A stretch of 64,000 nt of DNA. Origin: Macrostomum lignano. Taxonomy: Eukaryota. The position numbers and the translations under genes were made by a program. The DNA lies in contig NIVC01000219.1 of assembly GCA_002269645.1 (NCBI GenBank), forward strand, positions 186,001 through 250,000, written 5' to 3'. Each line of letters starts with the position of its first letter. Within the stretch, counting starts at the first letter, position 1. Below are positions 3,601-9,600 of this stretch, in pieces. The notes under the pieces are model-generated. The model was not told where the DNA came from, ran no database searches, and saw nothing but the letters and a program-made list of their open reading frames with translations.

Positions 3601-6600
3601 AGGTGAGACCGAGAGGATTAATTGCTGTTTCTCTCGTTTGCTTTTGAAACGGCGAAATCCTAGATATAGGGAATTGGCTTTTCTTTTCCGTGGTTTGCTA
3701 AGATGAAGCTAGTTGAAGCTAGTAAAAGGCGCATGCATTCAAGGATCAGGAGCTCTCTATCTGTTGAACCTGCATCAGCTGGGTAATCTTGGCTATAGCA
3801 AATACAATAGGTACACACAGCCTTGGTAGATGTTGTTCCGCCTCTTCTCCGTTCTGGGCCATGCGAGTGTCTCCAATTTCTTGCGATGCCATTTCTATGG
3901 TTTACTGCTCCGATTTTACATTGTTAACTATAAGTGCATTTCCCATTTAGGCTTCAAATTCAGTTACCAGTTGTGATGAATTTAAACGGTTAGTAGCTGT
4001 ATCTGGGAAGGGGTACTCTGACAGGGTCGAAATTTAACAACGTCGAAAAGCAAATGATTTCACAACGCCGAAAACTACTGCATGTTTTTTGTTACATTAA
4101 GTTTTCGACCCAGTGAAAGTGGCTGCTATTTGAATTTTCGACGTTGTGAAATTTTGAACTTGTGTGGAAAGCCTTGGGTGCACCCATAGTGCGTCTGTAC
4201 TAACTTTATCTACAAATTCTACGCGATATCATCATAATTTACTTTCATACCTTCTCCTTACCAGATGGTTGGACAAGAATGAAGACGACGGTCAAATCGA
4301 GAGAGATTTGACTCTCATCGGGTCGATGCTCGACAGTGAGTTTTTACTGAGCTTTTTTCTGAGCTCACTCTGAGTTTTCTGCGGCAACGGCATCAATTTC
4401 TCTGAGGCTTTGAATTTCGAATTTGCGCCGATCCAATGGCATGTCGCGCCATTATGCATATTGATACGCGCTCGTACATGTCGCAACTTTCTTAGTCAAT
4501 TCTCAGTTCATCCTCACTTAATTGTCTTTGTTAAACTAAACAAAACCACTCGCAAGAGGGGACACAGGGCCCAAAATGCGTAAATTTATATGGCATTTAA
4601 TTAGGGGGGGGGGTGAGTGTACATGTAGATAAGACAAGGAGGGGTGGAGTGCGTGACGAAAGAAAGAGGCCGAGCCAATCAGAAGGCAGCGAGGGAGAGA
4701 GAGAAAATAACAAGACTGAACCAAACAGAGAGGGAGAGAAAACAGAGTAAACAGAGACAAGTACAGATGAACTAAAAACGACTAAGAAAGTCGCGACAAT
4801 ACATATGATATATTTAAAGCCCCTGTAGCTTTGCTTTTATGCCTGCCCTGCCTGACGCAATGAGTTTTGGTTTGTGATGTACTTTGCTATTTTTGTACGC
4901 TTTGATCTTGTGCTCGTAGAAACGCGGTTGAAAAGAAAGATTTTGATGATGTTTATGCAATGCAAAATGAAGTTCATTATGCACCAAGCGATGTCAAGGA
5001 AATTCAACCTGAGAATTCCTTTTTTCCTACCGCAGAGATGTCCTACAACGTCTCAGTAAAGACTGGCGACGTGGCAGGCGCAGGCACCGACGCCAACGTA
5101 TTCCTGACCATATTCGGCAAGAATGGCGAGACAGGCGAACGTCAGCTGCGGGCGTCGGACTCGGCGCTTAACAAATTCGAGAGGAACAGAATCGACATGT
5201 TCAAAATTGAGAGTCCCGACATAGGAGAGGTTTGCGCCATGAACTAGAGCTTGACAATACGAGCGTATCCCCATTTTGAAATCTATTTATAAACTAACTA
5301 GCAAGGTAAATATCTAAGGAAGCTTAGATGCTCTGGCAACAGAAACAGAGTTAATATTGAACCGAGAGCATTATGGTATAGAAAATTGTCTACTAAGTTT
5401 ATCTTTCAGTGTCACTGCCAAGCTTACCGCTAGCTATTGCTGGCCAACACGACTTAGGTGAGTCGTGCAATTGACAGTTCAACCTTGTTCCCGCCCCATT
5501 TCGCTAACCCCTGGCGACCACGGGCAGCTGTGCCGGTACTCGGTGAAGACTGAGTACCAGTGATGCCGGTATCCGCAGCGCGGTCCCCCTCCGGAGAGTC
5601 CAGGAGGTGATGATCGCTCGTCCGTAGCCTTTAGGTAGCGGACGAGCTGGTAGAGATTCTCGGGCCTGAAAACATCCTGAGTAAAGACAGGGAATTCACA
5701 GATGAATTTCTCCGCATTCTCGACACCGGAGAGGCAAAAAGGGCAGCGCACTACCTCACTACGGATTTTTCCCTGTAGGTGACGATGCTTGGCAAAACAG
5801 CTATGATCCGAGAGGGCCATGGTCACCGCCCTGATGTCCCTGCGGCTGAGTCCAAGCAGGGCCCTGCGGAGGGCGGAGGAAGGACAGGGGACTGCCGCGC
5901 GGGATTGCCGGCAGTCGGGAGCGTTAGCCCACCTCTCTCTGTGCTTTGAAGCCACCCACTGGTTGATCCGAGTGGTGTCGCGCCTAACTCACTAACCTAG
6001 CTCGTAAAACAATAATTTTCTTGCAATCAAATCGCGACTAAAATTTTACACTTAAGTATTGTGCTCTAGAACATTAGAAGAGAAAAAGTTAAAGTGTAAA
6101 GATCTGTTGTGATTTTCTGATGCCGCCTCTCGCCGCAATTACTATCGGCTTTATCGGTTGATTTATTCGAGAAATTAATTTTCAGCTGTTAAAATTGTTG
6201 TTTTGGGGGTTGTTTAGCGTTCAAACAAGCTGACAAGCTGGTAAAAGCGTGAATAGGTTTTGATGGTCAAGACATTTCTTAGCGGTGCAGGCTTATTACA
6301 GAAACAAAAATGTTTTATTTTGCTGTCCAGAGCGCGGCGTTTTCGATTTTCTTGAGCCTGACTGAGTGTTATTCTTTAGTTCGACTCCTCAAAGTTATTC
6401 TCGTCATCGTAGAAGTCGTACAGACTGTTGTCTTGATCGTGCATCAGTCCAGCACGCTTCTTGCCGAAGTGCAGCAGTCCAGCACGCTTCTTGCCGAAGT
6501 GCAGCAGTCCAGCACGCTTCTTGCCGAAGTGCAGCAGTCCAGCACGCTTCTTGCCGAAGTGCAGCAGTCCAGCACGCTTCTTGCCGAAGTGCAGCAGTCC

Positions 6601-9600
6601 AGCACGCTTCTTGCCGAAGTGCAGCAGTCCAGCACGCTTCTTGCCAAGTGCAGCAGTCCAGCACGCTTCTTTCCAAAGTGCAGCAGTCCAGCACGCTTCT
6701 TTCCAAGTGCAGCAGTCCAGCACGCTTCTTGCCGAAGTGCAGCAGTCCAGCACGCTTCTTTCCAAAGTGCAGCAGTCCAGCACGCTTCTTTCCAAAGTGC
6801 AGCAGTCCAGCACGTTTACCGAAGTGCAGAAGTCCAGCGCGCTTCTTGCCGAAGTGCAGCAGTCCTGCACGCTTCTCGAAGTCGTCGCTGTCCTCATTAT
6901 CGTCACCCACAACAACGTCGGTTGCTTCCTCGCTAACTGGAATGGTCGCATCCGCCAGTCCATCAGCGAACCAGGCTCCGTCTAGGTCGGCGTCATTCAG
7001 CGCCACCTGGCTCTCGGCCAAGCTGCAGGCGCAGACCAAAGCAAGAAACGATGCAATAGCGATTCGCCACATTGTCTACGTTGTGCCCTGAAAGTGGATT
7101 TTTGATTTTAAAACCATGAAGCTTAAGGAGCGCATAAATTCCTGCTGCATAACGGTATCACCAAAGCAATCTATGCTCATACCTTTTACGCCTCAGCTGC
7201 GCTGTAGCTAGTCAGTTAGAGGAAAGTATTTCAAAAATAAAAGAGAAACTCCAACTAAAACCAGGCTTGGGTTCCTCGGAAAGTGAAAGAAAAATTTATC
7301 TGTCGACGTGTGTAACGTGTTTTATATGCTGCTGCCGTTCTGCTTTTAGGGAGAGAGAGAAAGAAAATCATCCGAAATGAAGGAAGATGGCTTAGAGAAG
7401 AAAAGAATGCAGAGCTCGAGATGCGGCAGACTGTTCTGGGATCTCTGATTGGCTAACGCAAATGACCAGTTTCTTGCGCTAAAAATAGTGCCTTTCTATT
7501 GGTTGGCAGGAATCAGGGGTTAAATCTATACGCTTGGTAGTTACGACAGGGCTGCAAACAGAATTGTCCGATCCACTAGTCCACTAGCTAGTTATCGGGT
7601 AAAAAATGCAAGAAATGCAAGGGAACTTTTGGGAATTATGTTTTTAGGACAGGTTATTTAAAACATGAGAGTACCTATTATTTCGAAGATGATGCTTTTC
7701 TGTAAGAAATTTAAGTTTCCCTTCGACCGACTTGAAGTATTCATCAACTTTGATCCACTCCACAGCTGGAGCGCATCAGGATTCGCCACGATGGCAGCCT
7801 GCCAAATTCAGGCTGGTTTCTCGACTGGGTTCGCATCGCCGTGCCCTCCCGCGGTAAGCAGTACCTGTTCGCCGCGCACCGCTGGCTGGACACTAACGAG
7901 GCCGATCGGAAACTGGAAATCGATATCGACTGCAGCGAAGTTACGGATATCGAACGAAGTAAGAAACTATTTCACTGATCATGGGATTCAAGTGGCCCAG
8001 ACGGACGTAGGCCCCCCTGTCCCCACCTCTATATATTTGACTACCTTATAGCTAATGTTGTACCATATTTTCAAGTTCATTGTTAAAAATTTGTTTTGCA
8101 CCCCGCCTCACCAATTCCCTAATTCAAGCCATTCCGTACGAGATAATCGTGCAAACCGGCGACTGCAAGGGCGCCGGCACAGACGCGGCCGTTTTCGTGC
8201 AAATCTACGGCGAAGATGGGCTCAAGACTGACCAGACGCTGCTTCGATCCCGCTCCGACAACTTCGAGAAGGGCAAAGAGGATCGCTTCAAGCTGGATCT
8301 TATCGACGTCGGACCAATTCAGAAGATTCGCATTGGACACGACGGTACAGGTTTCGGCGACGGATGGTTCCTTGAGCACGTGCTCATCAGGCGTCACGCG
8401 CTGCGCGGATCGCGTCGACTAAAACTTAATCGGAAATCGAGCTCTCAGGCTCGCAACCGCTCCTTGTCGCTGGCACAATCACAGCAGCTCAACCGAAGAA
8501 AGTCATTTGCTGCCGCTGCGGAGCCCTACAAAAAAGACTACTACGACGATGAAGACGACGAAGACGAGGACGGAGTGGTTGACCTAGACGAAGATGACAT
8601 CAGCAGCAGAAAAAAAACCGGGGCCCGGCGGCCGTCTGTCCGACCGGCGTCGGCTAAGAAACGTCGAGATTCATCGCCTGCGGGCAACACTAGGTCTCGC
8701 TCTCGATCGCCTTACGATGAGGATAACGATCTGCGTCTTTCAATTGGCGATGACGACGATGACAAAGACAGCAGACGAGACAGTAGATTGCGGCGTCGGT
8801 CATCCGCGGTGCAGAGTTCAAAAAGTCATGGACGAGGACGGCGACCCAGTCCTTTTGATGACGAAGAGGACGACTCGGACATAGACGGTGAAGATGAGGC
8901 TGGAGATCGAGCCTCTTCTCGAAGGGGTACTTTACGCCGTCCATCGTCTTCTGTTGGTGACCGCCACGCTCATCTGTGAAGCAAGCCCCGTTAAGAAGTG
9001 CCGATAATCGCAAGAACTTTAACGACGACGATAACTTTGACGATAGTGATGATGATTTGCCATCTTCGTCTAGGGGCAAAAAGCCTCCATCGTCGTCGCC
9101 CAGTGGACGGCGCTATTCAACTCGACCATCACGCGCTGCTCTTACGGACAGCCTTGAGGATGGCGATGGGCGAGCGAGTCGTCGGTCGTCGGTCCGGCCT
9201 GGCAGCGACGCCCTCAGACGACGGGCTAACTCCATGATTCCACTAAGAGGTCAGCAGCGAAGTCTCTGGCGCGTCGATGAGGAATCAGAGGGCGGCTTCT
9301 CAATTGACGACGCCGAAATGGATCAGGACGATCTGGACACCGAGTCGCTGACGTCGGCGCGTGCTCTGGCGCAGAAACGTTCAGCCTCGATGGTTTCGCC
9401 GTCAGGAATCGGTTCTCGTCGCCGATCGACAATCGGTCCGGCTCGGTCCGGTGAAGGCGTCGCTGCCGGATCGCAGCGGCAATCGATTAGAAGAGGTGAC
9501 AGCATTGGCGACGGCTCGTCTGACCTGACGTCAGCTGATGGTTTCGACGGTTGGTCAATTGTGACTGCCGAGGAGGAGATTGAGGAGTACTGGTTCTACT

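Follow-up and report, generated by a model that had tools for sequence, protein, structure and literature searches.

A genuine, or very recently genuine, multi-copy gene for an amidated neuropeptide-type prohormone, with a TATA/CCAAT promoter of its own, very probably lies on the minus strand of Macrostomum lignano contig NIVC01000219.1, where one of the introns of a LOXHD1-like gene encloses it. The whole stretch analysed comprises 64,000 nucleotides (nt) and is referred to below as the window; the anatomy of the peptide gene was examined on the minus strand of positions 5100–7900. Read in that direction, a start codon and a predicted signal peptide of 19 residues (7072–7016) are followed by an acidic spacer of 47 amino acids (aa) that contains 16 D/E and 0 K/R and closes with the first KR cleavage site (7015–6869), and then by an array of 14 units of the form AGLLHF-G-K(K)R (6868–6454), 12 of them intact (eleven of 30 nt and one of 27 nt) and two of 29 nt. 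The last segment (6453–6376) holds a degenerate 15th unit, an acidic tail and a TAA stop codon (6378–6376); it contains 8 D/E and 0 K/R, has a GC content at third codon positions (GC3) of 0.68, and is in frame with units 9–14 but not, as assembled, with the ATG. An AATAAA polyadenylation signal (6319–6314, minus strand) is found 57 nt past the TAA. This arrangement agrees with the sequence-only reading that first drew attention to the locus, which had taken the dibasic sites and the Gly donor for those of an amidated-peptide precursor: the first unit is preceded by KR, and many identical copies are present, as in a neuropeptide-type prohormone.

The start ATG at 7072 has an A at position –3 and an in-frame TAG 6 nt (two codons) upstream. 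The N-terminus that it opens begins with MWR, continues with a hydrophobic core of 13 residues and ends in SLA|ES, with small residues at –3 and –1 and cleavage predicted after SLA. Kyte–Doolittle averages over 9-mers range from 2.4 to 2.7 across residues 4–11. When judged by inspection, using hydropathy and the –3/–1 rule, the first 19 residues form what would be a typical signal peptide.

Coding signature of the repeat array

Tandem Repeats Finder returned one array at 6439–6876, with a period of 30 nt, 14.8 copies and 94% matches; the exact unit was observed 11 times, versus 0 matches in 100 shuffles. The units were delimited by splitting the array at each GCNGGACT, which rendered the 14 AGLLHF-type units plus the degenerate 15th. 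Units 9–14 (6454–6633, minus strand) are six perfectly identical 30-mers, all the variation being held by units 1–8, and units 6–8 echo the T,T,C type pattern of units 3–5. The repetition of that pattern in units 6–8, together with the identity of units 9–14, indicates a recent block duplication and an expansion at the 3′ end of the array.

With more than 25 tandem arrays in the window, the question was whether this one is coding or just another MINISATELLITE. The differences between units fall at six sites and comprise 7 variant bases, every one of them at a third codon position. All seven are synonymous in the peptide-repeat frame, and all seven are non-synonymous in both of the other frames; since only ∼27% of random substitutions would be synonymous by chance, the probability of this pattern is ∼1e-4. 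Such a pattern is the signature of purifying selection on the peptide sequence, to whose uniformity concerted evolution of the array also adds. The period of 30 nt is divisible by three, and among the units of other lengths the only one to preserve the frame (unit 2, 27 nt) is short of exactly one Lys codon. The base composition is also that of an exon: the peptide gene has a GC content of 0.58 and a GC3 of 0.64–0.70, against 0.55–0.60 and 0.70–0.83, respectively, in the exons of the host gene, while the flanking intron sequence, with a GC content of 0.39–0.41, is unlike it.

That a non-coding minisatellite should translate by chance into a peptide-like repeat is scarcely credible. The abundance of arrays in the window fits such an origin, as does the fact that all frames of this array are open on both strands. 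It is contradicted, however, by variation between units that is synonymous only, by the presence of an in-frame ATG, a signal peptide and an acidic spacer upstream and of an acidic tail, a stop codon and an AATAAA downstream, by the exon-like composition inside an AT-richer intron, and by significant HMMER matches to real precursors, which are described below. The signal peptide can be read in frame 0 only and the acidic tail in frame 1 only, so that at some time they must have shared a single frame. On these features the locus is a prohormone gene, real now or until very recently.

Frame breaks in the array and the database record

Units 6 (6721–6693) and 8 (6662–6634) are each 29 nt long, the Phe wobble base being missing in both. 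The first frame break lies at the junction 6705/6704 on the minus strand (unit 6, CACTT-GGA), and the second at the junction 6646/6645 on the same strand (unit 8, CACTT-GGC), 59 nt downstream of the first. As assembled, units 1–5 are therefore in frame 0, unit 7 in frame 2, and units 9–15 and the acidic tail in frame 1. The open reading frame (ORF) that starts at the ATG specifies 222 aa (7072–6404), with five intact copies of the peptide followed by ∼105 aa of Cys-rich, out-of-frame sequence, and reaches its stop codon at 6404–6406 (minus strand). A precursor of 232 aa with 14 copies is obtained only after two conceptual base insertions, the restored 30-nt units at the two deletion sites being CACTTTGGA and CACTTCGGC. 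The ancestral ORF would have been this 232-aa precursor, with its 14 copies and an acidic C-terminal peptide, and two 1-nt deletions would have displaced the last eight units and the tail from its frame. The gene had been called complete, a description that two –1 frameshifts in the assembled ORF do not allow; the accompanying count of 14 repeats was right as to the number of units, but they do not lie in one frame, and only five are in frame with the ATG.

Two ways in which a single product might be obtained from the sequence as it stands were rejected. An intron inside the array that restores the frame would be special pleading: the same GT and AG occur in every unit, there is no polypyrimidine tract, and any GT..AG segment covering both deletions is 30n–2 nt long, hence the frame is restored trivially. 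Programmed frameshifting would need two shifts in the same direction, and neither a slippery site nor a structure is present.

No orthologue of the precursor was found among ∼15 billion proteins, in JGI metagenome contigs or in the searchable literature. The frame-corrected precursor gave no match at E ≤ 1e-3 in a word-indexed search of 5.8 billion clusters, an exact look-up of the assembled 222-aa ORF returned no record, and a scan of metagenome contigs with back-translated peptide patterns yielded 598 pattern matches, 0 of which were confirmed by tblastn. When 1.84 billion representatives were searched exhaustively by HMMER with the intact N-terminal 117 residues as the query, 83 matches were obtained, the best of them mostly multi-copy precursors of amidated neuropeptides. 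The top match, P0057 (E = 8.5e-18), is a long basic-repeat protein with a C-terminal part that lacks repeats, and was not accepted as a neuropeptide precursor. The next-best types, with E values down to 5e-12, were LFRFamide precursors (GSLFRF/GSLLRF-GKR), myomodulin-type precursors and FMRFamide-like precursors, with repeats of the PMSMLRL-GKR and xPGVMRF-GKK types also seen, and the source names of the mollusc sequences among the matches included 'LFRFamide-1', 'LFRFamide' and 'FMRFamide-related peptides'. None of the 83 HMMER matches came from the same species and none had an all-HF array.

Several of the results weigh against the interpretation of the locus as a prohormone gene. As assembled, no single uninterrupted frame runs from the signal peptide to the stop. 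The similarity to known precursors is limited to the repeats and the processing sites, and the N-terminal 66 aa and the tail gave no match (E > 0.1) when compared against the 83 HMMER matches alone. None of the curated Pfam families, and no informative neuropeptide family, was reached by the precursor; with the Pfam family FARP (PF01581) it scored 8.5 bits versus a cut-off of 15.5 bits, in a test of low power, given that P0085 and P0058, the molluscan LFRFamide precursors run as positive controls, fall short of the cut-off as well. No match to the precursor came from the same species or a close relative, although, for a lineage without close kin in the collections, the absence of a matching transcript is uninformative as to expression. 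Further, ∼6 kb of PLAT exons of the host gene align without a frameshift, and several arrays elsewhere in the window, 95–99% identical, show 0% indels. These last two observations argue that the assembly is not generally indel-prone, and favour the deletions being real mutations.

If they are real, the locus might be a pseudogene that lost its activity not long ago, or else a defective allele, in which the 3′ two-thirds would be mistranslated into a Cys-rich tail and no useful product would result. The occurrence of two frameshifts within 60 nt speaks for such an inactivation, as do the intact PLAT exons and indel-free arrays just mentioned, and the very active turnover of minisatellites in the window could both expand and damage an array. 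Nevertheless, this explanation appears unlikely. Across the 14 units there is neither a stop nor any non-synonymous change, and the tail, read in the frame that is its own, has kept a clean acidic character, so that any inactivation would have to be very recent. Moreover, the two deletions fall at the same position of the unit (a chance of ∼1/30), on the first and last units of the duplicated T,T,C block, a pattern that has more the look of an error of alignment or polishing where a repeat is heterozygous in length. Finally, the five copies that share a frame with the intact signal peptide would undergo processing all the same.

An explanation of the deletions as errors of consensus building or polishing, made at the margins of the duplicated three-unit block, is somewhat preferred here. 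Besides falling at a shared position in the unit, the deletions remove a base by which the two types of unit can be told apart (TTT-GGA versus TTC-GGC), and the affected units bound the block formed by units 6–8, which duplicates units 3–5. Gap edges misplaced during the polishing of a repeat with reads from a length-variant haplotype could be the source of this pattern. The lack of decay in any out-of-frame unit is also on the side of an artefact. That the deletions are real mutations nonetheless has a substantial chance of being correct. The abutting host ORFs at 8976–8979 were considered as a test of indel error, but several GT..AG mini-introns could bridge their frames. Whether the deletions are real or not, the signal peptide is followed by five copies in its own frame, so that the peptide can still be made.

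Promoter, host intron and surrounding sequence

Upstream of the start codon, all on the minus strand, two CCAAT boxes (7502–7498 and 7452–7448) precede a TATAAA box (7326–7321). These motifs had been listed by the sequence-only reading and were located where it had placed them, although motifs of this kind carry little weight by themselves: in the window, the background is 1.56 per kb per strand for CCAAT and 0.52 per kb per strand for TATAAA. A putative non-coding exon 1, corresponding to the 5′-untranslated region (5′UTR), would extend from 7295 to 7183; it is suggested by the position of the TATA box and by the donor AAAAG|GTATGAG, its 3′-end being the splice donor and its 5′-end (7295) a guess set ∼25–30 nt downstream of the TATA box. 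The putative 5′UTR intron that follows (7182–7088, minus strand) is 95 nt long and of the GT..AG type (GTATGAG...CTTTCAG), and would be removed by splicing. The stretch from the TATA box to the start codon has four ATGs (7180, 7150, 7135 and 7117), and all of them lie inside this putative intron, as expected if it is spliced out. The 5′UTR intron, the signal peptide, the acidic tail and the AATAAA, likewise part of the earlier description, are thus present in the expected order and orientation.

The intron that harbours the peptide gene occupies 5230–7765 on the plus strand (2536 nt, GT..AG, phase 0), and splits a PLAT domain of the LOXHD1-like gene. The first half of the domain is specified by the exon at 4969–5229 (plus strand; positions 1–67 of the Pfam PLAT profile), and the second half by the exon at 7766–7960 (plus strand), which continues the domain after the AG at 7764–7765. 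When the two flanking exons were joined, the PLAT score was 80.2 bits over profile positions 1–108 of 117, as compared with 45.7 bits for the upstream half alone. Searches by tblastn with LOXHD1 homologues located PLAT-coding exons from 566 to 24248 on the plus strand. The best database relatives of one host exon are annotated as LOXHD1 (34–56% identity), and the host exon matches are spread across vertebrates, tunicates, rotifers, echinoderms, molluscs and flukes. The predicted host is a LOXHD1-like multi-PLAT gene.

From the promoter motifs to the AATAAA (7502–6314), the peptide gene is contained entirely within this intron and on the opposite strand, so that the antisense nesting proposed earlier was confirmed both in its boundaries and in the continuity of the PLAT domain. 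Small genes nested antisense in introns are common in animal genomes. It had also been suggested that the peptide might be co-expressed with LOXHD1 in mechanosensory cells, or expressed in a mutually exclusive manner, an idea for which the sequence offers no support. On present evidence, the nesting within LOXHD1 would be an ordinary genomic arrangement that is silent on function.

The same host intron contains, downstream of the peptide gene, a Cys-containing ORF of 158 aa (5479–5955, minus strand) without a Pfam match, which gives the impression of being the tail of a retroelement fragment. Further along the host gene, at 8080–10136 (plus strand), ∼1.1 kb of open, GC-rich sequence rich in Ser, Arg and Asp lies between two parts of one PLAT domain. 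This stretch is divided over two abutting frames (8080–8979 and 8976–10136), by either a frameshift or a mini-intron, and would constitute a large disordered insertion atypical of LOXHD1.

The mini- and microsatellite arrays of the window, unusually numerous at more than 25 and with periods of 3–199 nt, are found between 13543 and 63428, many of them inside introns of genes. A 21-nt array at 31457–34419 has ∼147 copies, and an 18-nt array at 61009–62107 fills an intron of an Aurora-like kinase gene. The 15-nt minisatellite GCCAGCACCAGAGGC is present at two loci in opposite orientation (22289–22559 and 27027–27560), both of them intronic, 99% pure and free of indels; one belongs to a LOXHD1-like intron, and the gene that holds the other is a minus-strand gene of the calmodulin-like EF-hand kind.

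The Aurora-like kinase gene itself (59075–62567, plus strand) shows 53–58% identity to metazoan Aurora kinases, with no phylum favoured; its divergence, and that of the LOXHD1-like exons, neither having a close relative in the protein collections, suggests a fast-evolving, poorly sampled lineage. An apparently single-exon ORF of 322 aa at 36689–37657 (plus strand) starts with a poly-Leu N-terminus similar to a signal peptide; neither a Pfam family nor an identical recorded sequence was returned for it. Several retroelement-like ORFs lie at 44944–47816 (minus strand), including a gag-like ORF with a zinc-knuckle-like CFFCNQPG motif and ORFs of acidic or basic low-complexity sequence. There are also exons at ∼54804–55430 and 56813–57178 which we take to resemble those of MOCS3/UBA4. 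No Rfam families or tRNAs were found in the window.

The predicted peptide and its likeness to known families

Processing, amidation, secretion, receptor action and neuronal expression are inferred for this precursor, not shown. The signal peptide would send it into the secretory pathway, where prohormone convertases would cleave after KR and KKR and a carboxypeptidase would trim the basic residues. Peptidylglycine alpha-amidating monooxygenase would then turn the C-terminal Gly into an amide, giving AGLLHF-NH2, for which the computed monoisotopic mass is 655.3806 and that of [M+H]+ is 656.3879. Once released, AGLLHF-NH2 would be expected to act on a G-protein-coupled receptor or on a peptide-gated channel.

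The same processing route would serve a secreted multi-copy peptide of non-neuronal function, such as a gland, defensive, pheromone or antimicrobial product. The signals read from the sequence are those of secretion and processing, and the window holds no cell-type cue, both of which leave room for such a role. It is, however, improbable, as the named precursors examined among the matches belong to neuropeptide families (LFRFamide, FMRFamide-like and myomodulin-type). A short C-terminal amide of hydrophobic-aromatic character is, besides, typical of neuropeptides, which also weighs against a non-neuronal product.

If expressed, AGLLHF-NH2 would be a new and easily synthesised ligand for receptor deorphanisation, from a lineage missing from the ∼15 billion catalogued proteins. 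It would bear on the question of whether the LxF-amide and HF-amide peptides of xenacoelomorphs, echinoderms, arthropods and spiralians are related or are convergent derivatives of RF-amides. The array would also exemplify how minisatellite-type expansion (here, six identical units) can set the copy number of a neuropeptide, and perhaps also break its frame.

The literature that could be searched contained no description of the exact AGLLHF peptide, of LLHFamide or of spelling variants. Novelty had been claimed on the condition that no known precursor be found; no identical or orthologous one was in the collections and literature searched, although the LHF-amide class to which the peptide belongs already has precedents. 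The earlier remark that AGLLHFamide was not recognisable as a named family understates these, which comprise the LHFamides of xenacoelomorphs, the Arg-to-His variants of arthropods and the XHFamide of a polyclad.

Among the more distant of the comparisons, the echinoderm L-type SALMFamides have a C-terminal L-x-F-amide in common with AGLLHF-NH2, a likeness that rests on three residues. They are longer (8–17 residues) and vary from copy to copy, unlike the AGLLHF copies, and no SALMFamide precursor was present among the HMMER matches identified by repeat motif or source name. The sea urchin SALMFamide SpurS8 ends in IHFamide (PMC3594158). In the polyclad Prostheceraeus crozieri, a cluster of larval neurons with GnRH, FVRIamide and FMRFamide also expresses a proneuropeptide called 'XHFamide' (Piovani et al. 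2023, PMC10396302), a name that denotes an x-H-F-amide ending such as that of the present peptide.

Variants of RFamides in which Arg is replaced by His include the FMHFamide of Drosophila, which activates the FMRFamide receptor, and the xLHF/xMHF/xIHFamides of tick, scorpion and spider (PMC12035899). HF-ending copies were likewise seen in the matches P0094 (Ornithodoros, a tick), P0097 (Oedothorax, a spider) and P0133 (Mercenaria, a clam, with one RSLFHF copy). These cases show that the HF-amide ending arises repeatedly from RF-amide families. The precursors of such variants differ from the present one in the long spacers between their copies and in the identity of the N-terminal residues, and their HMMER matches are weaker (E ∼1e-5).

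The likeness to molluscan LFRFamides proposed by the sequence-only reading was borne out, since their precursors are the best precursor matches (E = 5e-12 to 1e-8). Those of Candidula ('LFRFamide-1'), Biomphalaria ('LFRFamide') and Mytilus and Liolophura ('FMRFamide-related peptides') have peptides of the same length, which can be written together with AGLLHF as xG(S/L)LL(R/H)F-amide, and the same overall layout. The pairwise score with the Mytilus LFRFamide-type precursor was 49.7 bits, reached via the repeats only. In contrast to the molluscan precursors, the family-defining Arg at –2 is His here, with 14 of 14 copies ending in His-Phe-Gly; the copies are identical rather than varied, and the second, PHTPFRFG-like peptide of the molluscs is absent.

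Multi-copy precursors of peptides ending in LHFamide are known from xenacoelomorphs: ASALHFamide and LHFamide_2 in Diopisthoporus gymnopharyngeus, SALHFamide in Hofstenia miamia and LHFamide in Nemertoderma westbladi (Thiel et al. 2018, PMC6188537). The acoel ASALHFamide precursor carries KR-ASALHF-GRK four to five times, and the 'SxLHFamide' motif was likened by the same authors to the echinoderm L-type SALMFamides (PMC6188537). The L-H-F-amide ending is seen when AGLLHF-G is set beside ASALHF-G and VSPLHF-G. With ASALHFamide, AGLLHF-NH2 has the frame A-x-x-L-H-F-NH2 in common, four of the six residues being identical, and the two precursors share a signal peptide, an acidic spacer, back-to-back identical copies, basic sites and a Gly amide donor. 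Among the candidates compared pairwise, the acoel precursor ranked first, with 55.8 bits, in a BLASTP alignment that covers the acidic stretch and the repeats only. The differences are GL instead of SA at positions 2–3, and hence the lack of the Ser of the 'SxLHF' motif, linkers of GKKR/GKR rather than GRK, 14 copies rather than 4–5, and an acidic tail at the end of the array.

The orthology of the AGLLHF precursor to LHFamide, LFRFamide or FMRFamide-type precursors is not established. A more far-reaching proposal would be that AGLLHF-NH2 defines an undescribed family, that its precursor links by orthology the xenacoelomorph LHFamides and LxFamides, and perhaps the echinoderm L-type SALMFamides, to spiralian LFRFamide/RFamide-type peptides, and that its position within LOXHD1 reflects regulatory coupling to a gene of mechanosensory cells; very little credence is given to it. 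The motif class is already known, and the AGLLHF peptide is plausibly a new member of it. By sequence, AGLLHF-NH2 would be an LxF-amide of the LHF-amide kind, resembling the acoel ASALHFamide and the Arg-to-His derivatives of LFRFamide/FMRFamide-type peptides.

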